A DNA stretch of 64,000 nt, taken from NCBI GenBank assembly GCA_028023455.1, contig JAQFVV010000008.1, positions 12,214,001 to 12,278,000 on the forward strand, in the 5' to 3' direction. The notes under the pieces were generated by a model. The model was not told where the DNA came from and made no database searches. It saw only the letters and a program-made list of their open reading frames with translations. Position numbers and translations under genes: made by a program. Position 1 is the stretch's first letter, and each line of letters starts with the position of its first letter. This DNA comes from Epiperipatus broadwayi (taxonomy: Eukaryota > Animalia > Onychophora). Below are positions 22,343 through 63,365 of the stretch, piece after piece.

Positions 22343-23027
22343 GTGTTTAACTTTGTTCAAGTTTCTATAAATCCAACATATAAAAAATTTTATAATGATA
22401 AACAATGGGCATCAGTTCTTAAGGATATTGCTAGACAGGCCAAGGTCACATTGTCAGTGATAAATGGATTTGATTGTTTTGAAGGGGATTGGGAAAATGC
22501 TGAACATGCTCATGAATTATTAAAATTGAATATCTTTTCTGTAATGACTGAAGATGCAGAAGATTTGCCACCTACTGTGGTAAAAAAAGAAAAAGTGAAC
22601 TTGGAAATTAAAAAAGATACAACAGAAAAATCACATATAGCAACACTTATTGATAATTCTACCCTTCATTTTTCTGTAGAAGTTTTCAATATGGCCATTA
22701 TGTTAATTAAGGGAGATATTTTAAAAGAACAAGTTAAAGCTATTGTTTGTCCTATTGCTTCTAATTTTTCATCAAACTCACTTTTAACTAAAATTTGTCA
22801 AGAAACAGGTTATACAAATTTTAAACAGAATTTGAAAACGCCTTGTGATATAGATTCATTTAAGTCTAAAAAGCTTGGTGGTCAAATATTCATTATTACT
22901 TTAATTCCACCTGCTTCTTCTGATCCACAGAAAAATATGTTATATTTATGTAAAGTTTATGAAAGTATCTTTAATCATTGTCAAAACTCTGATATCGAGT
23001 CAGTAGCACTTTCTTCAATTAGTTCAG
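22343..23027 (+). CDS. DTX3L-like: Deltex/DTX3L-like gene exon: KH-like N-terminal segment + macrodomain (most of it)
   Basis: Acceptor TTTTAATTGTAG| at 22342, donor CAG|GTGAGT at 23027/23028, open 685 nt (ends phase 1). Macro motifs IMLIKGDILKEQVKAIV and LCKVYESIF...IESVALSSISS. Confidence 0.85.
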
Positions 23028-23732
23028 GTGAGTTTATTTTTTAAAAATCATAATATAGAAGTGATTATTATTAGTATTAAAGCTGAGATTCCACTGTATT
23101 TAATAACAAAATATATGAAAAACTATTATTAATAAAAACATTTTTATCAGGTTTTGGTATTAATTTCTAATCATAGTTTAGATAAGCATCTTGATGTAAA
23201 AGTTGCTTTAAAGGTTATGATATATAGCTTAAATATTAAGAAGCTAGAATTAATTGTGTTATCATAAGCAGTGGCAAACTGCTATTAAATATGATTCAAG
23301 TTCTATTGTTTGATTGTAATGCTTTATTACATATTCCTTAGGGCACAGAACTTGGCAAATACTTACATGCTTATATATATAATATTAAAACACTACAACA
23401 GAGAATAAAAATAAAATATAATTTAATAAACAAAGTATACTTTCGATGTGACAAACACTTACATGCTTATATATGTAATAATATTAAAACACGCAACAGA
23501 AAATAAAAAAAAAAAATTAAATAAGCCAAGTGCCCTTTCAAGGCATAAGCATCATAATTATGGTTATCAAACAAATAAACAGACAAACAAAAAACCAGTA
23601 CTTTTCCATTAAAAATTTTTAAAAAAACATTTTTTATTAACTTGAATGCTATTGGTGTCCTTATTCATTATGTGTTCATTTTGCATCACATGATCATCAT
23701 TTCCTATGCTTATGCAAACTACTAAAACAGTG

Positions 23733-23768
23733 ACAAATTCTCCATACAGTAGTGCCACTGGGTGACAC
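23733..23768 (-). mobile_element. 3'-end fragment of the hammerhead-headed element
   Basis: CAAATTCTCCATACAGTAGTGCCACTGGGTGACAC matches CAAAACTCTCCATACAGTAGTGCCACCCAGTGCCA at ~30250. Confidence 0.6.
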
Positions 23769-25369
23769 TACTATATAACGAGTTTGTCAGTCTAATGGAT
23801 ATAGAAAATATGTTAGTTGTGAAGGACAGAGTGATAACAAACATAAACACACATATTTAATGGACATGTTGGTTTTACAGAAAATAAATTGAATGAAGCA
23901 GGTAAGAAGTTGAAAAATGGGAAGACAAGAAATTTAATTAAATGGGCAGCAGAGATGATGATGAATTTAGGAAAAAACAAAATTAAATCTATTATCATGT
24001 TTTAATAAGATGGCACAGAAGACAGAATTTCTAGATATCTGGAATAATACAAGAGTGAGGCTATTATTTAAAGAAAAGGGTAAGGACCATAAAAAGATAA
24101 ACAATTATAGACTAGTAGCATTGATGTTGGTATTATATAAAATTTTTGCATATATGGTGACCATAAGGGTGGTAAAATGGATGGAAGAAAATAATATAGT
24201 GGGAGAAATGCAAGGAGGTTTTAGAATGGATAGGTGTATAGGAGTTTTATTTGTAGTCACACAATTTATAAATATGAGTAGGAATACAGTAGGCAGTTAT
24301 ATATGGCCCTTATAGATATAGAGAAGGCATATGATAGAGTAAATAGAAATAGATTATGGATAAGTTTAATAAATTTGGGAATGAATGGAGCTTTAGTGGA
24401 TCTTATTAAGAGATTGTATGAAAATAATTACTATAGTATCAATTAGGAAATATAGAATCAGAATTAAAAATGGGAGGGACTAAAGCAAAAATATCTTATG
24501 CCACCTATTTTGTTTTTGTTATATTTGAGAGAAATGGAGAGAGCAATAGAAAAACTAGGAAAAGAGGTAATAGATGGCAAGGGAATATATACATTATCAT
24601 ATCTTTTATTTGCTGATGATATCTTCTTGTGTACAGAAAGTAGGGAAGATGTGGAAGTTATGCTGAAGACTTGCACAAGAGTGGGTAAAGAGATGGGGAT
24701 TAAATTTAGTGAAGAAAAAATCAAAAATAATGATGATAAATGATGGGGAAAGAGAAGAAAAAGAATTTTTATTGGGGGATATAAAGTTAAGTGTGGTGAA
24801 TAGGTATAACTTAGGGAATTATCTTAAGTAATCAAAGGAATTGCTTGGATGAATGGGAGAAAAAATTGATAAATGAAGCAAAGAAAAGAAAGAGCATGAT
24901 AAAGAAATTAACAGTATTTTCATATAATAAATATGATGTAGCAAGAATTGTATGGAAGGGAGTGGCAGTAGCAGGGTTAACTTATGATAACAATGTGTTA
25001 CGTGTTAATAAAGGGGTATTAAATTACTTAGAAAAAGTACAAAGAGAAGTAGGAAGACATGCATTAGATGCAGATATGTGGATGGCAAAAGAGGCAATTC
25101 AAGAAGAAATAGGATGGTCATGTTTTTATATGAGAGATGCAAAAAGCAAAAATGAAAATGTTTGATAGATTGCAATTTATGAATAATAAGAGAGTAGCCA
25201 AAATAGATTTTTAATTGGGTTATGAGTAAAGGACAGGCAACAAGATGGGTGAGAAATATAATATGGTATTTAGAAGATTTGGATAAAGACTATATCAATA
25301 TACAAATAAATAATACTTCTGTATATAATATAAAAATAATATAAATAAAGAATATAGGGAAGTTTATCC

Positions 25370-26950
25370 ATCAGCAACTTTTATTCCGCAAATGTTTGCG
25401 AATGTAAAAACACATAAGCTTAATGCTCCTTTAAGATTAATGATGGATTTTACAAGGGCATATTATCAAAAGCTAGCAAAAATTTTAGTTAAGTGGATTT
25501 TAGATTTTGTTGGGTTTGGAAAATATACATTAAAATCGTCATTTGATTGTGTTACTATACTTAATAAAACAGCTATAATTAAGGAGTACGAGTTTGTTTC
25601 ATTGGATGGGGTGGAATTATATGGATCAGTGGATTGATCTGCATCTATTACAATTTTGAGAGATAAATTGTGTGCTAAAGAAATGCCACAGGATAAAATA
25701 TCTTTCATTATAGATGTTTTAATTTGGATAAGCAATGATATTGTTGCAGCACACGGTAGTAACTTATATAGAATGGAAAAAGGATGGCCAATGGGTTTGG
25801 CTATAAGTGGATTATTAAGTAATTTGTTTGTAGATAATATAGAACAGCGAATTGTGCATCTCATATTAGTAAGAAATGAGAATACATTATATTGTAGATA
25901 TGTGGATGATGTTTTGATATATGGGCTACCAGACATTATAAAGCAAATTTTTGATAGTTTGCAGAACCAAGATGGTTTAGTTTGGACAATAGAAAGAGAA
26001 GACAATTCTAGTATTAAATACCTAGATTTGCAAATATCAAGGGTAGATGGTAAATTAGTATATAAAATGGTTGTAATAGAGGTTACATTCATCCAACATC
26101 TAATGTTCCTTTAGTACACAAATTAGCTGGTTTTAGAGCTTTTTTAACACGTAATCAACAACTGTGTTCAAATGAAATGTTTATGAAAGATAATATAAAA
26201 TGTTATATGCAAGATTTAATACAAGTGGGTTATAATAAACAAATGCTATCATCTACTGTATTGAAGCATTATAAACGTCATAATAGTGACCATATAAATA
26301 TGAATAATAAACCATGGATGTCATTAGCTTTTATTCCCAATAATAATAAAAATATAATAAAAGTTTTAAGTCAAGATTTTCGATTAGCATGGAGAACTCC
26401 ACCTAACCTTAATAGGTTAATAAATAATTCTAAGGAAATAATAAATAAGGAGGATAAAAGCAGTGATGTATACTCTATTAGATGCCCACAAATAAATTGT
26501 AGTGCAATATATGTTGGAGAAACCAAAACAAATATTAAATATCACTTTCAACAACATAAATATACTTATAATAGAGCAAGAGAAGATGATACAGTTTATT
26601 CAGCTTTTTATGTTCACCAAAATAATACAGGCCATATATGTAGTCCAAAGGATTTTACAATATTAATGAATGAAACACATGATAAAAAACGCAAGATTAA
26701 AGAATCATATATTATACAAAATTCATCTTGTGCTATGAATTCAAAATTAACCAGCTTTCCGATTAGTTGTTCCTGGCCAATACAATGAAATGTTAGATTC
26801 ATCACCTAGGAGAAAATAGAATTGTTTACACTGCCTTGATAAGGACTCGTAAGAGTTGAAAGCGCTTGGAAATAATATTTGTTTTTAATTATTTATATTA
26901 AACTCTGTATTAACAATTGACACGAATTGTTATTTATATTATTTTTATAT
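25370..26950 (+). mobile_element. 5'-truncated Penelope-like element (RT + GIY-YIG), nested in the LINE
   Basis: KTHKLNAPLR, FVSLDGVELY, GWPMGLAISGLLSNLFV, YCRYVDDVLI, IKYLDL, then DVYSIRCPQINCSAIYVGETKTNIKYHFQQH...HQNNTGH...RKIKESYII (ORFs 25392-25637, 25656-26114, 26177-26788). Confidence 0.9.
26834..26869 (+). ncRNA. Minimal hammerhead-like motif (U3-A8 variant) in the Penelope 3' terminal repeat region
   Basis: CC-TTGATAA-G-GACTC-GTAA-GAGTT-GAA-AGCGCT-T-GG: stem II hairpin, GAAA, palindromic stem III AGCGCT, only 2-bp stem I. Confidence 0.55.
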
Positions 26951-27678
26951 CAATATACATGTACAAAAAGTGGGATGATTGTGTTAAGAGGATTGTTGAG
27001 TTTTATAGTGGTAAAAAATGGGATAGAAAAATAGGGAGCTGAAGAGATGGAGAACTAGTATGGATAGTAAAAAGAGTTTAAATATTTAAAGAAATAAACA
27101 ATAGTAAGGAAAATAGTTTACTGTTTAAGGCTCGAACAGGATCATTAGCAACAGGGGAATATATATATATAAAGGGAAAAATATGAGTGATTTAATCTGC
27201 AAGTTATGTAAGGAAGGCAGGCCATACAGTGGACAAAGATGATATTGTGGAAATTGTATGGAGCAGGAAGAAAAGAATATGAGAAAAAGTGTGGAGAATG
27301 GAAAGGGAAAATAAGATGGCTAATAGGTTTCTCAGGGCATAATAGCTGAGAGTTTTCTGACTTTGATAAAGGAATAGCCACATCACATTGTTTTAACAGT
27401 TTGTGTAAGCTTAGGAAATGGTAATCGTGATGTTTAGTGGATTAATACCATGGGATGATGGTATCTATGATTATTAAAGAACTAAAGACATCAAAGTATA
27501 TATATATATACTGAATAGAGTTCAGAGTTATAGGACTACACAAACAAATATGCTTGGATTGGAAACATTTGTTTTCATTTTGGATTTGTAGCTTTATAGT
27601 TAATTAAAAAAGGAAAATATGGCTGTTGATGAGTTATATTAGATTGTAAGATCTAGGTGCAGTGTTTTCTGATACAAG

Positions 27679-27724
27679 ATTCTTCACTGATGATAGCATC
27701 AAGCTAGAAACTAGTCTGGGGGAT
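27679..27724 (+). ncRNA. Minimal type I hammerhead ribozyme with intact core
   Basis: ATTCTTCA-CTGATGA-TAGC-ATCAA-GCTA-GAA-ACTAGT-C-TGGGGGAT: 8-bp stem I (three G-U pairs), CUGAUGA, 4-bp stem II, GAAA, palindromic stem III, GUC cleavage triplet (after 27716). Confidence 0.8.
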
Positions 27725-27813
27725 ATTGAATGAGTAGGCACTAGATAGAGATTTTATGCACAAACCTTGCATCCATTGATTATTATGGCTTATACTGGAT
27801 AGCACTACTGTAT
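27679..27813 (+). mobile_element. ~150-bp hammerhead-headed dispersed element, copy A
   Basis: Body GGATATTGAATGAGTAGGCACTAGAT...TTTTATGCACAA...CATTGATTA...GCACTACTGTATG is shared with copies at 30247-30368, 46843-46995 and 23733-23768. Confidence 0.8.
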
Positions 27814-28515
27814 GTTCAATTTGTGCAATAAACCAAGCCTCTTTAATCTTTTACTTTCTATCTTTCTTTTCCTTATACATTACTTTAACAATACCAGGAT
27901 CAAAACCCATGTCCATATTCCTTTTTATGATTATAAACATAGACATATTTGTTAAATCAATTTAGCATTTTTATACATTAACAAATGCATCATTCTGATT
28001 CTCCAATTTCCTTTCGTTTCATCATAATATATGTAAGAACTATCTGATTGACTTCACCCCACCACATATCCAGTGTTAGACCAGTCAAAATCTATATTAT
28101 CCTTCATATTATTTATTAACCTATTCAAATTCATGGGTGTCCCAAATACAACATTGAACTCATCTGCATAGATCTTTGCAATTTTATTTTTAACACATCA
28201 ATTCTAACTTTTTTATTCCCAAGCATAATATTTCTTTAAAATACTCAACATATTTATGTATATCAATTGCATTAAAACCTGATTTTATTATATCAGAAAT
28301 ATAAACTCAATTTTGTCAGACTCAAACTTACATAAATAGTTGTTTCAATGCAAAAACACTCAAAGCCATAAATTCATGAGTCATTCGCACTTGAGATCTC
28401 ACATTGACACACATTCTAATATTAAAAGGTTCAACAATCATTTTATAATACAATGAATTGATGGTCTGCTTTATTGTTAAATCCAAATAGCAAATTTCCT
28501 CATTCTGATTTTGTG
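27810..28515 (-). mobile_element. Penelope-like fragment (RT thumb + GIY-YIG), left arm of an inverted pair
   Basis: EEICYLDLTIK...YYKMIVEPFNIRMC (ORF 28328-28537); reverse complement of 28775-29480. Confidence 0.8.
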
Positions 28516-28560
28516 CACATACGAAAACATTATTCATTTAATATTGGAACAATTATATCT

Positions 28561-28616
28561 TCTTTGAAAGCTAACACTACACTTTTGTTTTGTAGTGTAG
28601 TGTTAGCTTTCAAAGA
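28561..28616. repeat. Perfect 23-bp inverted repeat with 10-nt loop
   Basis: TCTTTGAAAGCTAACACTACACT (28561-28583) and AGTGTAGTGTTAGCTTTCAAAGA (28594-28616). Confidence 0.95.
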
Positions 28617-28774
28617 GGATAATATAATCATTCCGATATTAGATGAATATAAAAACTATATGTTTATAGTGTGTGGATGATGTTTTTGGATATGCACGAC
28701 AAGCTGTTATTAATTATATGTTTGAATAATTAAGTACGAAATCATAATTAAATTGGACTATAGAGCCTGAAAAA

Positions 28775-29480
28775 GATGAGGAAATTTGCTACTTGGATTT
28801 GAAAATAAAGCAGAACATTGAATCATTATGTTATTATAAGATGACTGTTGAATCTTTTAAATATTAGAAAGTGTGTCAATGTGAGATCTCAAATGCCAAT
28901 GTCTCATGAATTTGTGGGTTTGAGAGTGTTTTTGCATCGAAACAACTATTTATGTAACTTTGAGTCTGACAAAATTGAGAATTGGTGAATTTATATTTCT
29001 GATATGATAAAATCAGGTTTTAATGCAATTGTTATACATAAATATGTTGAACATTTTAAAAGAAATATTATGCTTGGGAATGAAAAAGCTAGAAATGATA
29101 AAAAATGAATGGCACTATCATAATATGTTATATGTTGCAAAAAAAATTGCAAAGATCTGTGCAGATACATTCAATGTTGGATTTAGGACACCCATTAATT
29201 TGAATAGGTTAATAAATAATACCAAGGATAAAATAAATAAAATGGACCAGTCTAATGCTGTGCATGTGGTGGAGTGCACTCAGTTGGATTGTTTTTATAT
29301 ATATTACAATGAAATGAAAGCAAATTTGAGGACCAGAATGATACAGCATTCATTAATGGTTTTGATCTTGATATTGTTAAAATAATGTGAGAGGAAAGGA
29401 GTAATAGAAAGTGAAAAATTAAAGAGGCTTGGTTTATGGCACAAAATGAACACATAATGAATCAGAGAGCCAATAGCATT
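28775..29480 (+). mobile_element. Penelope-like fragment (RT thumb + GIY-YIG), right arm of the inverted pair
   Basis: EEICYLDLKIK; FRTPINLNRLINNTKDKINKMDQSNAVHVVECTQLDCFYIY...MKANLRTRMIQH parallels WRTPPNLNRLINNSKEIINKEDKSSDVYSIRC of the 25370-26950 copy. Confidence 0.8.
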
Positions 29481-30246
29481 CAAATTAGTAAAAAAAATAA
29501 GTTTTTAAAATTTGTAACGGAAAAGTACTGTTTTTTTTTGTTGTTGTTTATTTGTTTGATAACCATGATTATGATACATATTGAATCTATACTCAATTTA
29601 TTTAATTATATTTTATTTTTATTCTCTGTTACAGTCTTTTAATATTATTTATAATAGTGATAGAGGTTCAATCTATTATGTATAGTTATTGTGATAATAC
29701 AGATATTGCCAATCACACATGGTAGAGTGAGTTACTGAATTTTCAGCTTTCATATTATAAATGAGCATTTCCTTATTAAAAATCTTAAATAAGAATTATT
29801 AAATAAAATTACAAATAAGGTTTAATAAAATATTAATAATGCATATGTCCAATCCATTACTAAGGGAAAATGTTAAAGGGGGTGACTCAAGAATGAACGA
29901 TCGATATATTTGTTTAAAAGAAGGTTGAAAAATGAACAAATACACGCTTGATTTATTAATCTCTATATATGCTATTAAAGTTAAATATTTTGGCATAATA
30001 ATAAAAGTAAAATAATATCTAAAGTTAATATTATTATTTGTTTGTAAATTATAAATATTAAAATAGGTAAAAATATTGTAAATTTATAATATGCTCTAAT
30101 ATATGTAAAATTTTGGTCTTTATGAGTATAAATGAGTTCATCATTTGAAAGTTATAATGATTTCTAGGTAAAATAATTTAGTAAAATGAAAATTTGCAAA
30201 ATTTAAAGAAAAAGTATAAATTATTATTATTTTTTAAAATTAACAA

Positions 30247-30368
30247 AGGCAAAACTCTCCATACAGTAGTGCCACCCAGTGCCAACCAGAGTAATCATTG
30301 GAAACCAGAGGCTTGTGCATAAAATCATCATCTAGTGCCTACTCATCCAATATCCCCAGACTAGTTTT
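30247..30368 (-). mobile_element. Hammerhead-headed element, copy B (truncated within the ribozyme, keeps AAAACTAGTCTGGGG)
   Basis: Reverse complement aligns along its length with copy A. Confidence 0.8.
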
Positions 30369-32412
30369 TAAAGTTAATTAAAATTATAATTCAAGTTGTT
30401 TAGAGATGTTAATTCAATAAACAATTGAAGAGCTGAGGAACTAAGTTTGAAACAGATAATAAAACTTATTTGTGGATATACAAAAAAATATACACTTAAT
30501 TAATTAATAAAACTTTAAATCATAAAATAATGTGAGGTTATTGAAAAATGATTGTGATGTTTGGTCTCAGTTGCATTATAAATTTAAGAAGGTATATAAG
30601 GTCTAAGTTCATATATTAAAATCATTCAACTTTTTAACATTTAGTAGTTTCCTACTAAATTCATACGGGCTGTATTCACAAATGAGCTTAGTGATAAGTA
30701 AAAGTTCCAGCCTACAGTTTAGTAAATATTTACCATAAAATAAGAAGATCCTAGAAATTCATGTTGAGATTGAAGTTTTTTACATTATAGAAGCAGGGAA
30801 AAACTTCATTAAGTAACTGTAATGAGTGAAATGTGCAGTTAAACCCTACAAATTGTGGCCAAAACTTGCATAGTATATTCTCAGATTTCAAACCTACCCT
30901 ACTCTTCTATAATAAGAAGACTGAATACTGTAACACAGAAGGGAGTGGTGATTATTTGTTGGTAACCCTGATATCTATTGAGATCCCATGAATGTTGACC
31001 ATTTTTGTAATGAGTGGTACTTCCAAGCATTGTCGAAGTTAATTAAATATAACTATTACCACTGACTCAACCCTCTTGAGATTGATGATAATGATCAAAC
31101 TTCTATTTAATTTATCTTTAAGTATTTGAAACACAGGCTATATTTCCTGATCATCACTACTTTTGTGAACAATCAGTTTTAAGATCACAGTACACTGATA
31201 GTATATTTTGAGACTCCTGGCAACTGCCAGTTGTTTAGGGTCACCTTCCCTTAAAGAAGAACTACCAATGTACACATTCAAATAAGGACTGATTTCAACT
31301 TTATAATTCCCTTTTATTTCACTATCAATATTCCAAGCTGTAGCTCAGTTCAGAGAATGGAATTATACAAAGTTCAAATGATGGGGCGGTGAGATGAATA
31401 AAGATAAAATAATTTATGGATTGATAATCTAATTAGTGAAATCAAACAAATAACAGGAATAATGAACTATTATATATTTTTATTATAACAAAAATAAACT
31501 TCGTAATATGAAATCATAAAAAGAAATATGATATATACATAATAAATTAATTACTAAATGAATACTATTATTTTACCAAGTTATATGGATATAATAAAAG
31601 CAAATAAATATAAATGAACAACTAATAAAGTACATAGTATAAATTACTGATTGCTACTGGTATTTAAAAAAAAAAAAAAAATAAATTCACATAACATAAT
31701 AACTAAGGTATAAATAACTTAATTAATACCCATATTCTTTGTATTATATAAATTATGTTAGAAGTACATGTATTTTATTCATTTAAACATTATAAATTTT
31801 GTGGTAAAACATAAGCTTATGTGAGGCTGTTGAACCCAAACTATGTCCTTAACTTTAAAAGTTTTGTTTAATGCCATGGTATTTTTCTCCATTTGTGCAA
31901 TGTTTTTTGTAGATTATACATGTGTAACATTGTACAAATAAAGCACTAAATGCATCTCACAAGAAAGTAGTTTTCAAACCATACTTTTACTAAGTTCTGA
32001 CAATTGCTATTATAACTACCATAAGTTGCAACAGATTAAAATAATTAAAGATTAAATAGTAAAATAATTTAGTATATTTGTTAGGATAACATTCCTTGAA
32101 ATATTTATTATATTATATTGTTGGACAAAAAAAAATATTATTGTAGATAAATCTATTAATATTTTTTACAATAGTAGCAGAAATGTTTTGTACACATTTC
32201 ATTTTTTAATTTCAAATACTACCCTAAGAAATATTAATTCCTTGGCAATGAATTAGAATTTATTAGAAAATAGAATATACTTCAAACTGATACGTCTTTT
32301 AACCCCACCCCTCCCACAAGAGACGCATTGAAAAAATGAATGCTTGGACAATTCCTTAAAATGTATTCTACTTTATAAGAATTATATTTATAAAGCGCAT
32401 ATTTGTTCGTAA

Positions 32413-32584
32413 AATAATATTTATTAAGGCTATAACCATAAGACTATGCAACTGAAAAAATGACAGTAGGGACTTCTACAAATCTTGTCTTTTAAATAAA
32501 TCTTATATTAAAGATTTGTAGAGGTCCCTACTGTCGTTTTTTCAGGTGTGTAGTCTTAAGATTATAACCTTAATAAATATTATT
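32413..32584. mobile_element. MITE-like foldback, 74-bp inverted arms
   Basis: Arms 32413-32486 and 32511-32584 differ at 8 of 74 positions by my count. The 17-mer TATTCTACTTTATAAGA occurs at 32364 and 32581. Confidence 0.8.
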
Positions 32585-34029
32585 CTACTTTATAAGATAA
32601 ACTAAACAACATGACAGATTTTATATTTATCATGTTGGTGTTAATTATGATTCCATTAGTAGAAAAAATATCTTCTTTTTCTCTTAGTTTATACAGCTAG
32701 TGTCTATTTTTATCTAGCCAGTATCTATTTTTTATATCATGTGCTATCCATCCATAGAACATAAATATAAGCAACTTGCTCTTTGTAACTCAATAAATAT
32801 CAGCCAGCAGTACAAATTCAAGACATCTTTGTTTAATTAACATTAAGATTTATTATCATTTTATAAATTATGATAATAACATTACAATTCTATAATATTT
32901 TTTTTATAAATAAACATTTATCTTGACCTTTTTTACAAAGAGATTTACAAATTTATTGGTTTGAATCAACATAAACAAAACATTAAACAAATTCAAAGTG
33001 GCATAACTTAGAAATAGTACATTTCACTAGTATTTAATTTCACATTCATGAGATACATACGATTAAATTAAACTGAGGCATAAACATTCTAAGCTCATTT
33101 GATTTTGTCTGTACTCTATACATAATTAAGATTACAATATAGTATATTAATAGTTTAATGAGAGTAATTAGAGATGTGATTGCTAATCTATGCATGTAGT
33201 TCATGATTTAATCTTAATTCTAAAGTTCTTTATAACTGCAAACTAATATACCAATACATGCCCTATGATAATGAGAATGATTACCATAATCTCATTACAA
33301 TTATAAAATACCTATCTTCAAAATCTCCATATGAAATTGTGAAAATATAATAAAATTTTAACTGTCAAAACCTGTCAACATAAGGACAATGCTCATTAGA
33401 AAACAAGAATTGGAAAGAATTTAAATTTTTAGAAATCTTCTAGCACTTTGAAACAACTTTCTAATCCAAAAAGTCACATGTAAATTGAAATTCAGACTCT
33501 TAAAAGCCTAAATGAGGATGTTAGTATATATTTTTCTCTTTATTACTAATTTTAATTACATTTAAACGTGTTATTATTTTATTATCTATTTGTGCAACAC
33601 TTAGGATTTTATAAGTATTTAAAATATTATAATAGATTTTTCACGCTATCTTCATAATGCTTATTTGTATCTAGCAGGATTAAGACCCAGAATTCAACTT
33701 CAGGAGAGAATTGAGAAGAAACATTGATTGGGTTTATCCTTAATTCATTTTGTTTTTTAAAATGGATATATTAAAATAAAGTGTCTTTGTGCCAGTATAA
33801 GAATTTTTTTTTTTATGTAAACATTTTGAGTTGACAGTAGTTTAACCTATAAATATTTTTGTTTCAGTTTCTGTTTATGTCTGTCTTACATTTCATCCTT
33901 TTTATAAATAGCTGTCTTCAGAATTAACTGAAAAGAGACCCTTTTATTCCTCTTGGAGGCCTTAAAGGAATCGAACAAGGAAAATTCCTATGTCCACTCC
34001 ATACGTTTTTGTCTTTACAACTGTTATTA

Positions 34030-34760
34030 CTATGTGATTATTCATATAGTATACAAACATAGATAGGCTGCTCACCAACATGCATTAGCCAGCTTGGTGA
34101 CTTTATTGTTTTTTACCTTGGAGTTTAAGATCAAGAAACACCATGATCTTTCTTCTCAATTGCCTGATAGCTCTTAATGAAATATCGTTGTTTTTTTTGA
34201 AGGCAGAATGAATGTGTGTTGTGTGAATGAATTTTTTCTATTAGATATTTACAATCATGACAAACAAAAATAAATCATGGCCCTTATTCCCAGGAGGCTG
34301 TAAAGTTGCCAGCTAAGGCAACATTTGGCAATGCTAAGAATTGCTGATTGTGGGCTCAGGCTGTCATTTGATGAATATCTTTTATTTAGGTACTTACAAC
34401 TGCAGATACTTTCAAATGAAGGAAGATTGCAAGAATTGAAAGAAGAATTGTCTAATATTAAATGGGACGTTATTGAAATTTGTGAAGTTAGAAGTAAAAG
34501 AAGACAATTGATTTGGACATTTACTGTACTACAAAGACACAAACATTGGTAATACAAGTGAAATAGGATTCATTATTAATAAAAAGTGGAAGAACAACAT
34601 TGTGGAGATTGATATGTATTAATTCAAATTTTAATGACTTTGAGCAATTTCTATTTAGATTTATGAAGCAAACATCAAACTATGATATAGATTTGTTAAT
34701 AGTTTTTAATATGAAATAACTAAAAGTGAAAACAAGAATTTCATTATATTATTTTCTAAA
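34030..34760 (+). mobile_element. 5' UTR + APE endonuclease start of an RTE element (same family as 47030-50530)
   Basis: LSNEGRLQELKEELSNIKWDVIEICEVR (ORF 34325-34552). Upstream ATGTGATTATTCATAT...GCTGCTCACCAA and GAAGGCAG...GTGAATGAAT are shared with 47040-47220. Confidence 0.8.
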
Positions 34761-34769
34761 TTTACTATA

Positions 34770-40550: not shown

Positions 40551-40691
40551 ATTTATATTTTCAATTAACTTGGTTTAGAAAACTCAACACTTGATAGTTT
40601 TTTTATGTGCTCATTTCACTTGGAAGAAAAAAAAACATTTTAACATTTTGTACTTTTAATTATCAAAGTTTTAAACTTTTATTAGTTCTTG

Positions 40692-44314: not shown

Positions 44315-44369
44315 ACTAATTTGACATTCTAAACAATTGTAAAGAAAAATACTATAAAATTCAATAATA

Positions 44370-46000: not shown

Positions 46001-46542
46001 AAATTTCTGAATTTACTCCCGATGTATGTGCAAGTGCTGCATGGAAAAGTATCCAGAAGTATGCTACTACAAAATTTCCAAAAGGCCAAGCTTTGAAAGT
46101 TGTTCGTTTTGTTCTTGATAACAATGATCATGTATCATATTTTAAAACAATTTTTAATAAATTATTACAAAAGCGTGACAGTCCACCATCATTTGAAAAT
46201 AAATCCAAGAAGCAGTCAAATATAATTTCTAAAAGTCTTCCAGAGAAAGCATCAAAAGCTGATAGGAAGATAACACCATTAAATAAATGCCCTCTTTGTG
46301 CTTTTGATATGTCTACCAAAAATGTTACTTTGGACTGTTCTCACAAATTTTGTGAAAAATGTATAACTGACCACTTTCGTTATAGTAAGACCTGTCCAGT
46401 TTGTCACAGATTCTATGGAATCCAGTTGGGTAATCAGCCTTTTGGTAGAATGAATAATTATATTATTGACTCACCTTTATCAGGATATGAAGAGTTTGGA
46501 ACAATTGTCATACAATATGAATTTGGCAATGGGATTCAAAAT
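46001..46542 (+). CDS. DTX3L-like: Deltex/DTX3L-like gene exon: macrodomain C-terminus, linker, C3HC4 RING, DTC N-terminus
   Basis: Acceptor CTCTCTTTTTTTTTAAAG| at 46000 (phase 1, matches previous exon), donor AAT|GTAAGT at 46542/46543. CPLC-x12-CSHKFCEKC-x10-CPVC, then YGIQLGNQPFGRM...GYEEFGTIVIQYEFGNGIQ. Confidence 0.9.
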
Positions 46543-46995: not shown

Positions 46996-47029
46996 TTTAA
47001 TAACAGTTATGAGCAAGCTTAAGAAGTGG

Positions 47030-52569: not shown

Positions 52570-55500
52570 TGTGCCCTTTTGTATGGGTCACCATCTGATT
52601 TTTGTGCTAATATCTTAAAAATTTTAAATTTAAGCTATATTTGAATATGTGATGTTAATTTTGCTTATGGTAATATTTCAAAAAGTTTAATTAAAGCAAT
52701 CTATGAGTATTTGATATGTGAAATTGTGCTGATATTGAGAGAGACATTTTAAATGATGATGATTATAATATATGGTTGGGAAAAAATGGCCATAATCAAT
52801 ACTGCATTAATATATTTAATAAATAGGTATTTAAAGCTAAAAGTGTTTAAAAGACAAGTAAGAATAAATGCATATATTTATTGTTGATAAAATAATAATA
52901 TAAAAGAATATAAATATTTTAATTATTGTAAGTACTTAAATAAAAGACTAATATTTGATTTTAATAATATTGGATAATTATTTTAAAATCTATTATAATA
53001 TCTTATTTATTTAAAAAATATTTATTTTAAAAAATGCAATTGTTGGTTTATTTTTAGACGATAACAAGCGTTTCTTGTGTTGTAGTAGAAACAGATGTTA
53101 GTTAAATATACACAAACATGCTTGGAAGTTATTTAGCAAAGTTGCAAAACTATTTTAAAAATCATGTTGTAAAATTTATAAATAATACGTGAGCTATCAC
53201 GAGATAAAAATAAAGATATTCAATGTGAAATATTAAATCTGATTTTAAAATATTGTTTTAAAAATATGACGTATAAAAAAATACTTAGTTTATTTTAAAT
53301 AATCTTATAAAAGTTAAAATTAAAATCAAGTAAGTAAGAATATTTTAAAAGAATGTTTAATAAATTTAAATGAACGATAAAGATTATTTTAGAAATTTAA
53401 TAATGTAATAAATATTAAATATTAAATAAGTCATTATTTATTTTTAATTTTGTGTTGTTGGTAAATATGTAAATAAGCCAGCAAATTGATTGTTTAAATG
53501 TACCAATCAAATGGGAAGTTTCTTCCGGTATAAAAGCTCAGTTCAATTGTTAGGAGAGGACTCTGTGATTGATTTTTCAAGTTAATTGTGTTATTAAAAA
53601 TAGCTACGTAAATTTTGTAGACGCTTTTAAAATCATTTTTCAAAATTATAAGAGTGTCTTGTAAATAAGTTATAAAAGTTTTAAATGATAGACATGCAGT
53701 GTTAATTTAATTTTCCCTATCGATCGTCTCTATATCAAGCTCAATTTACAAGCAAATAGTCATGGGAACATCATATATAGTGAAAATATATCGGAAACTT
53801 TATACTAAAAGTATGACAAACGCTGGATTAGTTCGGATAATTACGAGATGGAGAAAAGTAATATTTTGGATAGTATATAATTTTAAAAGCTAATTGCTAT
53901 TGACTATTAGAAAATTAAATACTTTAAAGAATAAAATACTTCTTTATAAAGAAAGTATTTTGTAAGATATAAATTTATATATATTTTAAGGAAAGATATT
54001 AGAAATGAAAGTAGCTTTGAATACTTGCCTTGTTAAGTCTTTATGATTAAAAGACTGAATGTGGACAATTTTAAAAAGGCAAATAGATTAAAAATATATT
54101 TAGCTAGAAATCTTAATATAATAAAGATTATTATATTGAAATAATTTAAACGCTGGTTGTTTAGATGAAAAAGCTTATTCTTACCTGGATATTTTGTTAA
54201 GAGATGCGCAAGTGGACGTCCCAGTTAATTTAAAATAATTAAATGATAGTTTTTCATAAAACTAAAGACTAAGCTAAAATAATAACTTTTGAATAATATT
54301 TTAAAAATAACTAAATCAGGATCCTATAAACTATTTTAATTTATTTTATTTTCTTGTGGGGAACTTATTTTAAAAAAAAGAACATTTTCGTTTTCATAAA
54401 CTTTTAAAAAACACGTGATGGACCGGAAACAGGAAATGGTGTTCTAGTAAATATGTGCCTAGTATTAAAGAACTGTATGGTGAAAAGGAAACATCGCTGG
54501 AATTACGTAATATGAATTCTGTTTATCTATCTAATATAAAATTTAAATATTATTAATTTATTAAAACAAGATAGGTACATTTTCTTAAAATAATAACTAA
54601 AAAATAATATAATGATTAATTGCATAAGTTTATTTTATAATTAATATAATACGGAATATGTTAAAGAATGATCGTGAGTGTAAATGTGAATTATTTTTTA
54701 TGAAGCTGTAATTCCGAAGATTATTGGAAGATGGACTGTACATTAAATCATTATTGATGGTAAAACTTGTATAATAATAATAATTTTGATGTATTGATAT
54801 GTTTTCTTTAGATCAACCAAATATTGTGTTGTTTTGAATGAATGTATGATTATTTTAAAAATACACACACATTATATTGGCAGTAACAGTTTTATTTAAA
54901 TATGCATAATTTGAATTTATGATATAAATATGACACAACATTACATAAGAAGCTTAGAAATAATTATATGATTCTTTCGTAAATAAATTTTGATTTTGAT
55001 TTTTATTATTATTATGTTGGAGTATTAGAATTATATTTATTATTCATATAAGTAATTATTTTATTTCAAGTTAGGAAGAGATCTCAAAGTCTATATTTTA
55101 TTTTTATTTTATTGGATAAATTAAGTTAGGTTTTATGTAGAAGTTTATGTTTGAATTAAAGGTTTACTGGATATAAATGACGTAGTATAAATAATTTGGA
55201 TAATTAATATTTATTTAGAGTTGAAGGTTGTTTTCCCGGAATTTAGATAAGTTTTAGAGGATGTTTTGTAGATAAAAGTTTAGTAAAAAGGAGTAGAATA
55301 ACACATAAAGTAAAGTAATAATTTCACACAGAAAAGAATCATAAAATTTATCTAATATAGTGCTTTATGAATTTGAAATTGATGAATACTTTAAATATTA
55401 TTATTTTAACAGTACATATATGTAATGCATATTTGATAAAACATATAACATAAATTGCAATAAGTGAAATATAAAATTATAATCAATTCTTTGTTATTAC

Positions 55501-56604
55501 ATTACAAGGATACATTAGTTTCTATATTATGCTATTAAAGTAATGCTGATAGTAAAGTAAACACATACTAGTACATGATGAAATGAATAACAGTAATACT
55601 TAAGTGATGTAGCAATTTAATTAATAAAGTTTAATTGTTTACATATGCTACATAAATATTGTTTACATAAATCTTGATTTGTAATAATTAAGGTTCAATG
55701 ATATTTATTTAAAGCCTAAGTTTTAAAAACATACTTCAATGTTATTAGTATATCATTTTAAAAGAATGTATAGATTATTTAGTAGGAGTATGAGCTAATA
55801 ACAGTGTAAACATCTTGTATTATTATTTTCTTATTTTTTATTTTCTTTTGTTTTCCTAATTTGAACTGTAAATATTGTAAATAAATTCTTAGTCAAAGTT
55901 AATGTAAATAAATTTGTTTAATTTGTTTTAAAAGTGTGTCGAGTTCATTATTTTGCACCACAGCATTTGACAGCAGATAATTTGAAGAAACATAATATTT
56001 GCACAATGTGAATTTATTAATATTATTTTAGAAATAAATATAATATTTTCCTGATTATCATTTATGAGAATTGATTGACATTATTACATTATATTACAAT
56101 GGTCATAGAGTAATTATAATGCATAATATAAGAGTACAATATTATTTATTACCACAGATTATTAAATTATAAAATTTTGATCTATTCCAAAATTAAGATA
56201 CTATATGAAAATAAAAGATAGTCATGTTATTATTATTTAATGATTGATGATATAATAGGAATAGATAAGGTTAAGTTATACCCTAAGAGTATTATTATTA
56301 TTATTATTATTAAAATAAGTTAGGTGTATTTAAGTTTGATATAAAATCCCATATCATACTTATTTACATGAGTTATCATTACTTTAAGATAATTAGAAGA
56401 ACCTGAGATTATTTAATTATATTTTAAAAATTAAAAGTTAAGATTTATTTATTTTATTATTAATAAAGATAATTTATTTTATTTTAAAAAGCAAAAATTA
56501 AATAATAAGAAGGAATTAAATTAGGTATAAAAAATTAATTATTATAATATAAATTAAAAATAATGAAATTATATTAATAAAATATAAAAAAAAAAAAATA
56601 AAAA
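52570..56604 (+). mobile_element. Unclassified ~4.0-kb poly(A)-ended insertion in the 5' LTR
   Basis: The 3' LTR is contiguous at GAAATAAT-TATATATATA-ATGATTATATAAATAAC (59785-59820). In the 5' LTR the same halves lie at ~52550-52569 and 56605-56630, with (TA)n on both sides and an A-rich tail at 56577-56604. Confidence 0.65.
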
Positions 56605-57037
56605 TATATATAATGATTATATAAATAACTGTGTAACAATGTTATTAGGTTATACAGTTGCACAGCTGGCCTATATGGTTAGGGAACTTTAAAAAACATC
56701 ATATATGGTAAGGTATATGTCAAAAGTGTCATATATGGTAAAGTATGTAAAAAAACACCATATTTGTTAAAGTTTGTAAAGACTCCAGAAGTCTTGAGGT
56801 ATATATAAACCCCCAGAACCTAGTCTATATATTCTGGTATAAATGTAATTCAGAGAATCTTGGCTCTGTAAGTCCAAAAGCAGGACTAGGGTTTATTATG
56901 TGCAGATCATTGCAACCTTTTATTATTTTAATGCACTTAAATAGCCTATGTACATTTGTAAATATGCTCGTACGTTATTTAAATTAAACTATTAGCTTAT
57001 CATCTCAACTCTGTCTTTGTCAATGGACACAGGAAAT

Positions 57038-57170
57038 TGGCACAGTCATTATAGGAATCAAATCTTGAGTAATTGACTGAACAGCAAATTGGCGCAATCA
57101 TCATAGGAGTTGAATGTTAAGTAATTGTTTGAACAGCAAACTGGATCAGTTGTCACTGGATTTGAACTAA
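57038..57170 (+). promoter_or_regulatory. Degenerate primer-binding site (tRNA-Ser-like) within three ~52-bp tandem units
   Basis: TGGCACAGTC...TAGGA 3 nt after the 5' LTR end, TGGCGCAATC...TAGGA one unit later; resembles TGGCG(C/T)AGTCGG(C/T)AGGA, the complement of tRNA-Ser 3' ends. Confidence 0.45.
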
Positions 57171-59907
57171 CAGAGAAAATGGCGGGCATATGACAAGTTG
57201 GTATATGCAAATTGAATGTGGATAAAGTGATTGGCCACTGTATGTTCAGTGAATAAAATATTACACAAAGTAGTATAACTAAGAATACTGTAAAACTAGC
57301 CTCTTTACTTCGCAGGCCAAAGAGTAATCGAGATAGCTATGAAGATTCGTCGGAGACACAGAAATATGATGAACTTGTAACAAGGCTAAATGATTATTTC
57401 AACTCCCAGTCATTCAAGTTTATTGCTCGATTACATTTTAGAGGCAAAAGACAAAGGAAAAATGAACAAATAAAAGATTACGACATGAACCTAAGAGAGA
57501 TGGCAAAATCGTGCCTTTATGACAAATTTTTAGAAGAAGCTCTCCTCCAGTAACTATTATATGGGCTAATAGATGATCAGGCTTAGGCAAATATTATTAG
57601 GAGTAAAAGACTTAACTTATGAGGAAGCAATTGGACATGGAACAGCTCATGAACTACTACTTGATCAAGCGGGAAAGTTCAGAAGTTTCACAAGACCTTC
57701 AAGCTATAATTTATAAAATGCCGGCAGTTGAATCTAAAACAGACAAACAAGTTAAAGATTTCTGATGCAAAAAAAAATTGGTCACAAGGCCCGTGACTGC
57801 AATAAGCAAGAAAGTGAAAGTTGTAGGAAAATAACTGATAACCCGAAAGATGGCACCACCATATGAAGCCGAACAGAAAAATTACTTGCAGTACAATGGA
57901 AAGTAGCTACATAAAAAATGCTACCATAGATGAATCAGATCAAATTATGCTAAATATATAAATAATCGGCAAACCAATAACCATGGCAATCGATAAATGG
58001 GGTAAGAGTATCACTGATGAAAAGCAGGAATTGGAAAAGTCTAGTTAAGAATTTAAAATTCATCCCAAAAGTAGAGAAAACTCACATCAAGGCCTGGGAT
58101 GCTAGCAAAAATCCTATAAGAATATTAGGAGCTGCAAAACCTAAAGATAGAAACAAAGAAGTGTAAAGAAATACTACCATTATACATAGTGAGCGGAGAA
58201 ATTAACCCAATCGTAGACCAAGAATGATTTGCACCCTAGGAATAAGGATTCGCATCATTAAAAAAAATCAATATAGAATCACAGGATAAAATTATATCGC
58301 ATGCGGACACATCTAGATGCCCAGAGAAAGCCGAATTGCCTAGGGCAGAAGCCTATGTAAATTATATTGATTAGCTAGCATAAAAACTATCAATAGACTA
58401 ACAATAGCAGAATGGACTAATGCAGATGTTGTCTACAGAATTCATAAAAAAATTGAATAGGGAGCAAAGTACCCTTTAGATGTCCTCCCTACTTAAATAA
58501 AGGACTACGGAAAGTATGCGAGAGGTTGTCCATAAATAAAGGCTGTATATTGATGGACGACAGTCATGCATGAGTACTTAGATTATTAGATCAGGATTAT
58601 CTAGGAATAGTTAGAGCTAAAATCCTGGCAGACAACTATGTATGGTGGCCATGAATAAATAGAGATCTCAAGCTGTATATTAAAAAGTGCAAGGAGTGTC
58701 AAATCACAGCTGATCAAGCACCAAAAAAATATATCTCATGGCCTATCCCAGAGAAAGCTTGGGAAATAATTCACATTAACCATGCTGGTCCATTTAAAGA
58801 ACATTATTAGTAGTGATGGATTCATATAGTCGTTGGACTGAATACTGAATTATAAAAAATATTAGTTTGTCTGCAACTATCGAGAAACCTAAGGAGATAT
58901 TCACTACACACGGAACACTAAAAATCTTTGTATCAGATAATGGTATTGCTTTCTGCTTGGAGAAATTCAAAGATTTTATTAACGAATGGGGATAGAACAT
59001 ATAAAATCACCAACATATCACCCCGAGTCAAATGGAATTGCCAAGGAAGTCCAAAACAAGAAAAAAAACTTAAGCAAGGTTAATGAAGCCTTATTTGAAA
59101 TAGTGTTTGAACATTGTATGCTATCTAGTACTACTGGGATTTCCCAGCTTTCCCAGCTGAGCTTTGTTTCAAAGAAAAATGATGAATAAATTGTCAATCT
59201 TGTTACCTACCAGACAAAAAATTAATGAGCTACTAATGATGAAGAAAATTTGAAATAGGTGACAATGTTTCGTCAATGAATAAATTTTAAAAAAGTTGGG
59301 TGAAAGCAACCATCACTAGAAATATTGCAATGCAACTGGCAGAAATTGAAACTGAAGAGGGCATAAAACTTTGAAAGCGTAATAACCAGCTGAGAAGATG
59401 ATATCTGTTGACTTAAAATAATGGAAACAGTGAAGAAACAATTGGCAACAACATTGAAGCATGAACTACAGCATCAACCAGACTGGAGATCTATGATCCC
59501 AAAGGAAAAGAATTGTTGATGATTGGAGACTTTCGAAAATGAGATAGCTATTCTGAAATCACTATCGAGGAGCATCAAAGAACACCAGCATCCAAAAGAA
59601 CCAGAAACCATCCTGCTCATCTCAAAGATTATGTTAGGTGAAGAATCATACTTGTGGAGTTGGGGAGGAGTGCAGTGTTTAAGATCAAGCAAGGAATATA
59701 TATGTGTGTGCAATAATAAATGTATAATAATTGTGTAGAATAAAAATAATAACTTTGTACAATAATTATGTATAATGATTGTGTGAAATAATTATATATA
59801 TAATGATTATATAAATAACTGTAACAAGAAATATGTATGTTGTTAGGTCATAGAGTTGTGTAGCTGGACTTATATGTCGGAGAATTGAAAAAATGTCTTA
59901 TATGGTA

Positions 59908-60743
59908 TTTGTGGATTAAAATGGGAAACTAAAGGAGTGAAAGTAAATGGAGATTATTTAAGTCATTTAGATTTCGCAGATGATGTAGTTGTTTTTGCAA
60001 ATAATGCTTAAGAGCTGCAGGAAATGTTGCAGGAGTTATCAGATGAAAGTAGGACTAAAGATAAATGTTAAAAAGACTAAAGTAATGTTTAATCGATTTG
60101 CTCAAAATATGAAAATAAAGATTGATTATGATGAATTAGAAGTTAACAGTTATAAATACCTTGGTCAGATTATTAATACAGATGGAAACATAATGGAGGA
60201 AATTAATCATAGAATTAAACTTGGCTGGAGTGCTTTTGGTAGAAATAACTTGATGCTAAAAGGAAATATGCCTATGTGTTTGAAAAGGAAGGTTTTTAAC
60301 AAATGTGTTTTACCAGTTCTTACTTATGGATCTGAGACTTGGACACTTAATAGAAGAGCAATACAGAGCCTTCAGACCACTCAAAGAAGTATGGAGAGAT
60401 TTATGTTGGGAGTAAGAAGAAGAGATCGAAAATGCAATATATTGGTAAGAAAACAAGCAGGTGTTACTGACCTCATTGAAAAAATTAAAAGATTGAAATG
60501 GAGTTGGGCTGGTCATATTGTTAGAAGAGATGATAACAGATGGACAATTGGAATTTTAAACTGGATTCCAAGAGATTGTAAAAGACCCAGAAAGAGATCA
60601 CATGTGAGATGGATGGATGAAATAAGAAAGTGTGTAGGGGTGATGTGGAGAAGGGAAGCTAAAGATTGGAGAAGATGGATTGGACTTGGAGAGACCTTCA
60701 TCCTGCAGTTGATTGATAATGGTTGATAATGATGATGATGATG
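59908..60743 (+). mobile_element. Relatively young 5'-truncated RTE retrotransposon inserted in the Gypsy 3' LTR
   Basis: KVNGDYLSHLDFADDVVVFA, YKYLGQ...RIKLGWSAFG...CVLPVLTYGSETW...LKWSWAGHIVRRDDNRW...RPRKRSHVRW (ORF 59989-60726), (GAT)n tail; LTR sequence resumes at ATGTAAAAAAAAC. Confidence 0.9.
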
Positions 60744-61385
60744 TAAAAAAAACCCGCCATATTTGGTAAAGTTTGTAAAAACTCCAGAAGTCTTGAGAGG
60801 TATATACACCCCCAGAACCTGGTCTATATGTTCTGGTATTAATGTAATTTAGAGAATCCTGCCTCTGCAAGTCCAAAATCAGGATCTGGGTTTATTATAT
60901 ACAGGTCACCATGACCTTTTATTATTTTAATGTGCCTCAAATAGGCTATGTACATTTGTAAATATATTTATACGTTATTTAAATTAAACTATTAGCTTAC
61001 CATCTCAATTGTCTACTTGCTGCTCACAGGACACAGCACATAGTATTTATAAAAGATTTTTTGGGATAATTTGAAACTATAAAATCTGCTTCAAGCAAAT
61101 AAATAACGTTTTTTAATAATAAATTAATTTTATAAAGTTATTTATTTCAAAAAACCTAATAACTAATACTTGATTAATATTAATATCGATTTTTTTTTTT
61201 AATAAACAAACTATCAGTTAAGTTATAATTTATGTGCACTGTAATTTAGTAAATAATCATTAAATTGCTTCTTATTTCTAATTTTTAATAGACTTTGATT
61301 CTATTGCTTTTACTTATCTATCATTTATTTTATCTGGTTTCTTGAAAAATAACAGATCATTGGAGTCATCTTATAGTCAACCTAA

Positions 61386-61488
61386 TTTTTTTTCTTTCTC
61401 ATGTGTCATAGCATCAGCCGGGAAGCGAACCCGCTATCCCAGGACAACTGCTTGTAAAGCAGCTGCCGCTGACCTCTCGCCCACCAAT
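61386..61488 (-). mobile_element. tRNA-derived SINE, second copy
   Basis: Reverse complement TTGGTGGGCGAGAGGTCAGCGGCAGCTGCTTTACAAGCAGTTGTCCTGGGATAGCGGGTTCGCTTCCCGGCTGATGCTATGACAC plus A-rich tail; B-box-like GGTTCGCTTCC. Confidence 0.75.
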
Positions 61489-63147
61489 GCATGGTTATTG
61501 TTAATCAACCAATATGGGTATGTAAATAAATGCTTGATTATTGTTAGTTAGAGAATAAAATTTCCAGACTAATCTGAGTTGATCAGATGATTGTCTTACT
61601 AACTGTAAAAACAAAAGAAGCAATTATTGTGTTGGGAAGTGATGTAATACTCATAGTTCATAATTAAATATTTATAATTATACTCAACGTTTATAAACTT
61701 TTATTAATAAGCATATATGTTTTTCTCATGTACATTTGATTATCAATCATTAATAATTAACTTTATTTATTATTATGACATTAATAATATTTTATGAACT
61801 ATTAATGATGTTGAAATGATTAGCTTTCAGATTTAATTGTTGATAATGATATATCCATTGAAATGGCTGTGAATTAATTTCACCTATGAAATAGTTTCGT
61901 TTAATTTGAAATAATATTGATGATAAAAGCTACTTTACATAAAGAATGACATCTAAAAGATGAACTGTCAGTTAAAAATGATTAAATCAATAACAAAAAC
62001 AGTCGTCATTATTTGTAATAATTACTGGCCATTATTTTTCATTTTTCTAATAATTGATTTTTCTATATTATTGATACTTTTTTTACTCAAACCATAGAGA
62101 AATGCCATAAGTTTCTATAATCATGAACCAAAAGTTAAACTGTTGTCAAAAAAGCATGTCACTTTTTATTTTATGACTCATAGAGTAAAGATGAAAGCTA
62201 TTAAAGAAAAGCCTTGCTTTACAGTCTCTAATAATAAACAGTTTAATAATCAAGAAATGCAAAAACTCTCTACAATTATATTCAAAATTTGGAAAATACT
62301 GTATACATATACACAATTTTCAAAGATATGTGGAAGAATTTGTCTTCAAGGTCAATGCAGAAAAAAATATTTAATTGCAAGAAACTTATAGTGAAAAGCC
62401 TTGGGAAATACTAGGCATTAGTGGAATTAGTATGACTAAATTAAAGTTTAAAGAAGCCTTTTTGTGACTTCAGGATTTTTATTCTTCAACATATTAAACC
62501 AAACATACAGCGCAAACATCATATTTATAAACTTATTGCTCTTAAAGAAGTGTCAGGCATCAAAAATATGATTTTTATTATATTAGTATTATCGTATTAT
62601 TTTTTTAATTTAATGGTAAGCTTTTGAATGAAAGTTTTTATTTCTATTTTCAGCTTATAAATAAATTAATTTATCACTTTGTTGTTATTACATCACAAAT
62701 TGTGTAGAAAAATAAAAAATAATGACAATTAGTTCTTAGCAGTGATTAATGCATAAATTTGATCTGCTTTGTTTTTCATTCTAGTGAAGCTTGACAGTTT
62801 TTTTAAGCAGATAACTCAGCGAATTATCTATTGATTAAACATGTTTTTTGGATGTTTTTATCTGGAGAATAAAGGGTCTTAGGGTAATCTGGATTTGTCA
62901 TATATTGTCTATATGATATAAATTTTCATCCTTCTAAGATATCTTACAATATAGACATTGTATGGTTTGTTTTTATTTTTGCTCACTTTTCTATAATATT
63001 ATAGCGGAATAATATTGTGAAAAACTTCGCTAGTAATTTGTTATGTTTAGCTAGATTTAGATTTATTGGTAAAATACCAGTCAAATTAATTTGATTTTTG
63101 AAATATAAAAATTTTGTAGTCTCTACATTTACTTATTTAATATTTAG

Positions 63148-63365
63148 ATTGGTCATCCAAAACCAGGTTTATCCTACAATGGAGGCTGTTACTCTGCTTA
63201 TTTGCCAGCTAATGCTGAAGGTCATAAAATTTTAGAACTACTTCGAAAAGCCTTTGAGCAAAAATTGATTTTTACAATTTCAAGAGCTATGTATTCTGGC
63301 GATCAGGAATATGTTACATGGAATGGTATTGATCATAAAACATCAATGACAGGAGGAAAATTGGT
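63148..63365 (+). CDS. DTX3L-like: Deltex/DTX3L-like gene exon: DTC domain core
   Basis: Acceptor TATTTAG| at 63147 (phase 0, matches previous exon). IGHPKPGLSYNGGCYSAYLPANAEGHKILELLRKAFEQKLIFTISRAMYSGDQEYVTWNGIDHKTSMTGGKL. Donor GTAAG at 63366 (alternative GT at 63364). The expected GYPD terminal exon is not seen in the window. Confidence 0.9.

Follow-up and report, generated by a model that had tools for sequence, protein, structure and literature searches.

A probable DTX3L-like gene with a macro-like domain and a variant DTC pocket in the velvet worm Epiperipatus broadwayi

In human DTX3L (BBAP), the partner of PARP9, a C3HC4 RING leads directly into a DTC domain. The protein also has RRM and KH-like domains, lacks a macrodomain of its own and uses those of PARP9, so that reader and ligase are divided between two genes, with the macro-PARP partner gene adjacent. 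In the DTC pocket, His582 and Glu608 of DTX2, which correspond to His707 and Glu733 of DTX3L, form the catalytic pair that activates the 3′ hydroxyl of ADP-ribose (PMC10810221). In DTX3L, the H707A mutation abolishes formation of ubiquitin-DNA, E733A considerably impairs product formation, and Y719A, at the position equivalent to DTX2 H594, is also defective (PMC11460948). A recent preprint states that DTX3L lost its macrodomain when PARP9 emerged, macrodomain-bearing orthologs representing the prior state, and that the DTX3L-PARP9-PARP14 axis disappeared entirely from insects and copepods (Picard et al., bioRxiv 10.64898/2026.04.23.720386). We analysed a stretch of 64,000 nucleotides from the velvet worm Epiperipatus broadwayi (contig JAQFVV010000008.1, called C8 below, positions 12214001 to 12278000), referred to as the window in its full length, which holds three exons of a probable gene combining a macro-like domain, a RING and a DTC domain.

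The best explanation of this locus is a protein-coding gene of the Deltex family, closest to DTX3L and of the macrodomain-bearing, pre-PARP9 type, with at least four exons, belonging to a tandem pair, and with a variant pocket probably devoid of canonical ADP-ribose activity. We give this reading a probability of about 65%. The original prediction had proposed a PARP9/DTX3L-like module fused in a single chain. What stands of it is that macro-like domain, RING and DTC lie in one invertebrate gene, with the DTC nearest to DTX3L; the architecture is not novel, as macrodomain-bearing DTX3L orthologs have been reported. In Picard et al., non-tetrapod DTX3L orthologs have macrodomain and RING-DTC in one chain, like the window gene; most of those described there carry an RRM, which was not found in the exons of the window gene.

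Two entries in public collections put single-chain combinations, either of macrodomain, RING and DTC or of macrodomain and DTC, on record, so the architecture is already known and not a new fusion. One is an ESM Atlas cluster named "E3 ubiquitin-protein ligase", the nearest named cluster to our second exon, with the same three domains in a single chain and from a different ecdysozoan phylum. It has 50 members, mostly from Nematoda, with a representative of 407 residues, and DTC is present in 100% of them, zf-RING_2 in 82% and Macro in 70%; its feature score of 0.80 to that exon is a lead, not proof of kinship. The other is a distant protein of 2319 residues from a public read-set assembly (P0001), which is the best match of a profile made from our first exon (2e-8). 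Like the window gene, it has an AIVC motif in its macro-like domains, followed by a DTC with an acidic residue, E, at the catalytic His position and QQL at the Glu position. Unlike the window gene, it is much longer, has at least three macro-like domains and, at residues ~2150-2310, shows just a reduced Cys motif where the window gene has its full RING.

Exons and domains of the gene

Genome searches were made in the E. broadwayi assembly (5,601,407,764 bases in 18,588 pieces), where the window is C8:12214001-12278000, and all searches and folds were run on single exons, never on one joined protein. Four exons were recognised, three of them inside the window, which is AT-rich (~26% GC):

22343-23027, + strand: exon A; acceptor ..ttgtAG, donor GTGAGT, phase 0 in and 1 out, 228 full codons; conserved N-terminal alpha/beta segment, acidic linker and first three quarters of the macro-like domain
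46001-46542, + strand: exon B; pyrimidine tract and AG acceptor, donor GTAAGT, phase 1 in and 0 out, 180 full codons; end of the macro-like domain, linker, C3HC4 RING and first 38 DTC residues
63148-63365, + strand: exon C; AG acceptor, donor GTAAGA, phase 0 in and 2 out, 72 full codons; DTC positions 42-110, including WNGIDHKTS
C8:12281229-12281298 (window-equivalent 67229-67298, outside the window), + strand: exon D; acceptor ttttAG; one base completing the split codon GT+T, then 22 residues (DTC end) and a stop

Exons A, B and C contain no internal stops, and the codon split between A and B (G+AA) encodes E. The three together measure 1445 nt (481.7 codons), in agreement with the original prediction of three exons joining in phase into ~481 codons: splice sites are good, frames are open, and exon C has phase 0/2. 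Because exon C stops two bases into a codon, the gene has to extend past it, and a search of the E. broadwayi genome with the DTC family located exon D 3.9 kb 3′ of exon C. Exon D brings the known coding sequence to 1512 nt (504 codons), spanning 45 kb. The three introns measure 22,973, 16,605 and 3,863 nt and contain reverse-transcriptase fragments and other retroelement debris. Compared with most arthropods, E. broadwayi has introns that average five times longer (PMC9985152); in a genome where huge introns are usual, lengths of 17-23 kb are therefore unremarkable. The window has only 18 open reading frames (ORFs) of at least 90 residues; the one over exon A, with 233 codons, ranks second in length, and the remaining ones are mostly transposon fragments.

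The macro-like domain is split by the 23-kb intron:

22670-23027, + strand: N-terminal part of the macro-like domain; exon A residues ~110-228, positions 13-134 of our hidden Markov model (HMM), with structural matches of the AlphaFold2 (AF2) model
46001-46170, + strand: C-terminal part, the last helix-strand-helix; exon B residues 3-56, HMM positions 139-190

Taken alone, exon A scores 12.3 bits with Pfam Macro (PF01661), below the cut-off of 22, and its sequence profile found no match among solved structures in the PDB. A profile made of exon A and its counterpart in a tandem paralog (described below) was scored against 1.84 billion proteins and matched six of them, the best at 2e-8. All six contain Pfam Macro, with E-values of 5e-14 to 4e-86. 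From 15 macro segments cut out of these six proteins we built our own macro HMM. Exon A residues 110-227 align to its positions 13-134 with 53 bits. In exon B, residues 3-56 align to positions 139-190 with 10.6 bits, a score that none of 500 shuffled sequences attained (maximum 4.8). The two matches are collinear, and the junction residues S, E (from the split codon), I and S fill exactly the four HMM positions between them. When the HMM was run over both strands of the window, exon A came out best and exon B second among 1903 open segments, so no other segment of the window could complete the domain.

Structure prediction points to the same fold. In the AF2 model of exon A, whose predicted local distance difference test score (pLDDT) is 57, residues 117-228 have structural matches that are almost all macrodomains. 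The best is the DarG macro (Z 8.6, root-mean-square deviation 2.8 Å over 106 residues), followed by the rubella macro (8.1) and Af1521 (7.8); among PARPs, PARP14 macro 1-2 scores 7.7, PARP14 macro 2 7.5, PARP9 macro 2 7.2 and PARP9 macro 1 7.0. The reading of a macro domain completed across the 23-kb intron, as had been proposed, is thus well supported.

The second half of the protein was easier to recognise:

46282-46410, + strand: C3HC4 RING; exon B residues 94-136, Pfam zf-RING_2 3.5e-8 and zf-C3HC4 1.9e-7
46429-46542, + strand: start of the DTC, profile positions 2-39; from exon B residue 143, directly after the RING

All eight C3HC4 zinc ligands are present, so the RING is intact, as originally described. 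Among solved RINGs, exon B matches RNF4 (6e-13) and RING2 (1.8e-12), and it also matches DTX3L, DTX1 and DTX2 chains. A C3HC4 RING followed immediately by a DTC is the arrangement of the Deltex family. The DTC had been called intact on the evidence of three exons, which is not the case inside the window: positions 113-133 of the 133-position profile (PF18102) lie in exon D. With exon D included, the profile is covered at full length, by positions 2-39, 42-110 and 113-133 in exons B, C and D, and it runs near-seamlessly, leaving no room for further exons among these three. The exon C match is strong (2.3e-24). The exon D match is weak by itself (E = 2), although place, phase and order are right and the exon can be aligned with the C-terminus of DTX3L. 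Among solved chains, DTX3L matches best both with exon C (chain 3pg6, 1.3e-18, against 2.9e-13 for DTX2 and 1.8e-11 for DTX1) and with exon D (1.1e-3 against 0.077).

Upstream of the macro-like domain lies a further conserved segment:

22343-22552, + strand: N-terminal alpha/beta segment of ~70 residues; 28 invariant columns between the paralogs, AF2 pLDDT 71.5

It had been described as KH-like; we reject this identity as demonstrated, though it may yet hold. Pfam found neither KH nor RRM in exon A, so neither of the two N-terminal domain types of human DTX3L was detected there. For the segment itself, Pfam returned no match of any kind, Foldseek gave none better than E 0.38, and a wide structural search with VIA returned generic alpha/beta sandwiches (best Z 4.4) and no KH match. 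Atlas leads to clusters of PARP14-type KH plus macro score 0.76-0.77 only.

The tandem paralog and the DTC pocket

Counting paralogs had been suggested as a check, and it produced a second gene with the same four exons on the + strand of C8, at 12043181-12125149, about 170 kb upstream of the window gene:

C8:12043181-12043855, + strand: exon A′, 35% identity to exon A
C8:12071823-12072335, + strand: exon B′, 38% identity to exon B
C8:12095529-12095732, + strand: exon C′, 51% identity to exon C
C8:12125084-12125149, + strand: exon D′, the equivalent of exon D

Exon order, boundaries and phases are identical in the two genes, including the phase-1 split inside a macro loop, and all frames are open. 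That such a diverged paralog keeps the four exons in the same order with open frames is the strongest sign that exon A belongs with exons B to D. A layout shared at 35-51% identity also argues for long-term selection on both copies, as far as sequence comparison can tell. Word searches with exons A and B yielded no fragment from the same species that would prove a junction; exon A had no match, and exon B matched one RING-DTC fragment of 285 residues at 39% identity, in a search whose length filter leaves out full-length kin. These observations support, at the level of sequence, the view that the exons make one chain, which would be a macro-like, RING and DTC protein in a velvet worm.

No PARP catalytic exon was found within about 3.4 Mb of the locus on contig C8, the nearest being at 15.67 Mb. 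The window gene thus differs from the PARP9/DTX3L module, as no macro-PARP partner gene lies near it, and from PARP14 and PARP9, whose PARP catalytic domain has no equivalent in the gene or nearby.

Functional residues of the DTC pocket were mapped on chains 3pg6 and 6y22, on which all three numbered residues land on the expected letters. At the His, Tyr/His and Glu positions, the three Deltex genes compared read as follows:

Window gene: D (WNGIDHKTS), N (NGYPD), Q (VRQQL)
Tandem paralog: H (WNDIHHKTS), Y (YGYPD), E (VKMEL)
Third Deltex gene, on contig C6224: H, H, E

The paralog has the pattern of human DTX3L, with which it shares IHHKTS, YGYPDP.YLKRVK.EL and the residues of H707, Y719 and E733, while the gene on C6224 has that of DTX1/2/4. 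In the window gene, where the first position lies in exon C and the other two in exon D, the catalytic His and Glu, described as conserved throughout the Deltex family, are replaced by D and Q. The DTC is therefore not intact in the functional sense either, having D/N/Q instead of H/Y/E. DTX3L is the closest solved relative of this DTC, yet the window gene has N at position 719; DTX3 has no solved chain for comparison.

The macro-like domain is altered as well. Canonical macrodomains hold ADP-ribose through the Asn of an NAAN motif and the glycines of GGG and GxxG loops. Loop 1 of the window gene is AIVCPIASNFSSNS, with neither NAAN nor GGG, and loop 2, which runs over the exon junction, is SISS-E-ISEFTP, with no glycine and no GxxG. 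The PARP14 and PARP9 macrodomains match the predicted fold of exon A, but the ligand loops of the window gene are degenerate. Those of the paralog are equally degenerate except for one Gly. The Asp of the GDI motif in exon A is retained. In the macro part of exon B, a SASAAWKS motif is identical in the paralog.

Weighing the explanations

If the reading given at the outset is right, the intact RING would let the protein still recruit E2~ubiquitin. The D/N/Q pocket and the loop-less macro-like domain, on the other hand, would probably not support canonical ADP-ribose binding, nor canonical ubiquitylation of ADP-ribose or of nucleic-acid 3′ ends. As the RING is intact, we favour an ordinary lysine-directed RING ligase, or else a protein that assists the canonical paralog in a non-catalytic or regulatory way; in that case its macro-like domain would be a module for protein interaction or for an altered ligand. 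Several points speak against this reading. We infer the exon junctions from sequence, not from transcripts. Exon A by itself misses the Pfam Macro threshold, the domain being divided between exons A and B, and AF2 modelled it with low confidence. The gene start, or start-codon exon, was not found in upstream searches: a tblastx comparison of the 42 kb upstream of exon A with the 30 kb upstream of the paralog revealed only a shared long terminal repeat (LTR) retrotransposon gag-pol, and a ranking of open segments by codon usage, the top eight of which were scanned with Pfam, yielded no 5′ exon. Loss of activity is deduced from substitutions, and an Asp at the His position could conceivably act as a base. 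Finally, P0001 has a similar E...QQL pattern, so the variant pocket may be a conserved functional alternative and not a loss.

Two of the rival explanations concern the gene itself. Exon A could end a macro-only gene or splice elsewhere, with exons B to D forming a separate RING-DTC gene, and the 23 kb of retroelement-filled intron between A and B, together with junctions that rest on sequence, leave some room for this. We consider it very unlikely: exon A stops in the middle of a domain at a consensus phase-1 donor and exon B opens in phase 1 with precisely the missing macro elements, no other segment of the window fits, introns of such size are usual in this genome, and the paralog keeps the A′-B′-C′-D′ order with the same boundaries and phases. 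Alternatively, the window gene might be a degenerating copy of the canonical paralog that is not expressed, its pocket substitutions being the first signs of pseudogenisation. Functional residues are indeed gone from both its macro-like and DTC domains while the paralog DTC keeps H/Y/E. Such a fate is hard to reconcile with copies that are only 35-51% identical, meaning an old duplication, and with a window gene that still has all 504 known codons open in a 26% GC genome rich in stop codons, consensus splice sites throughout, all RING ligands and an intact DTC core; decay of this kind seems to us very unlikely.

The other two rivals concern function. In the original prediction the gene was a working single-chain reader and writer, the macrodomain binding ADP-ribosylated targets and the RING-DTC ubiquitylating ADP-ribose in cis, as an immune effector. 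The architecture is present as described, the adenine-contacting Asp of the GDI motif is retained in exon A, as are the second His of the xHKT motif and the GYPD motif, and the acidic-residue/QQL variant shared with P0001 hints at a pocket under selection. Nevertheless, D, N and Q stand at the positions of H707, Y719 and E733, where the alanine mutants of DTX3L are defective (PMC11460948), the residues of H582 and E608 being the catalytic pair for ADP-ribose (PMC10810221), and the macro loops have neither NAAN, GGG nor GxxG. Because of this pocket and these loops, a reader and ADP-ribose ligase in cis is unlikely for this copy, and the claim was not upheld. A different and still doubtful possibility, though one we take more seriously, is that the D/N/Q pocket is not decay at all: as the pocket of P0001 suggests, it may represent another, conserved form of the DTC active site, associated with macro-like domains of the AIVC type. 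On the whole we retain a DTX3L-like, macrodomain-bearing gene whose variant pocket probably lacks canonical ADP-ribose activity.

Surrounding sequence and meaning for the Deltex family

The introns contain retroelement debris and a long ORF:

24010-26788, + strand: retroelement debris in intron 1, not part of the gene product; RVT_1 matches of 2.2e-9 and 3.9e-7
59989-60726, + strand: in intron 2, the longest ORF of the window (245 residues), no Pfam match

The stretches 2299-3151 and 24010-26788 contain RVT_1 fragments and ORFs with a YVGE..K....R..QH motif. This motif has no Pfam match and looks like the GIY-YIG endonuclease of Penelope-like elements. The ORF in intron 2 resembles the end of ORF2 from a non-LTR retrotransposon. 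Some 18 kb before the start of the window, C8:12195418-12197055 is an open gag-protease-integrase frame of 545 residues from an LTR retrotransposon, and a 35-78% similar copy of this frame lies upstream of the paralog, at C8:12031074-12031731; this is the sole similarity seen when the two upstream regions were compared.

Elsewhere in the genome, C9:13007608-13008178 is a third exon-B-like stretch (RING and DTC start) at 34% identity, with stops inside its matches; either a pseudogene or a third copy with different splicing could account for it. On the − strand of contig C6209, positions 1252444-1254366 hold an uninterrupted open frame of 1618 residues with two Macro matches and one match to the PARP catalytic domain. 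This has the appearance of a PARP14-like macro-PARP gene lacking introns, which would be unusual in a genome of giant introns. Three PARP catalytic exons are clustered on C193 (1.19-1.54 Mb). Five strong Macro matches with open frames of 313-471 residues fall within 0.8 Mb of C8 (16710281-17539640) and suggest a local expansion of macrodomain genes.

With the gene described here and its neighbour, the known macrodomain-bearing ligases of the DTX3L-like kind gain a pair from Onychophora, possibly a previously unsampled phylum. The pair supports the view that a single chain at first combined reader and ligase, and that tetrapods later came to have them apart, on PARP9 and DTX3L. Neighbouring paralogs with H/Y/E in one and D/N/Q in the other also offer a natural contrast for the role of the DTC pocket and of the degenerate macro-like domain. 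Should the variant pocket be a conserved alternative after all, it would mark out a subfamily of Deltex proteins that either use another acceptor chemistry or act purely as readers or scaffolds, and this subfamily would sit beside a canonical DTX3L-like gene in a panarthropod, among whose insect and copepod relatives the whole axis is reported as lost in the preprint cited above.

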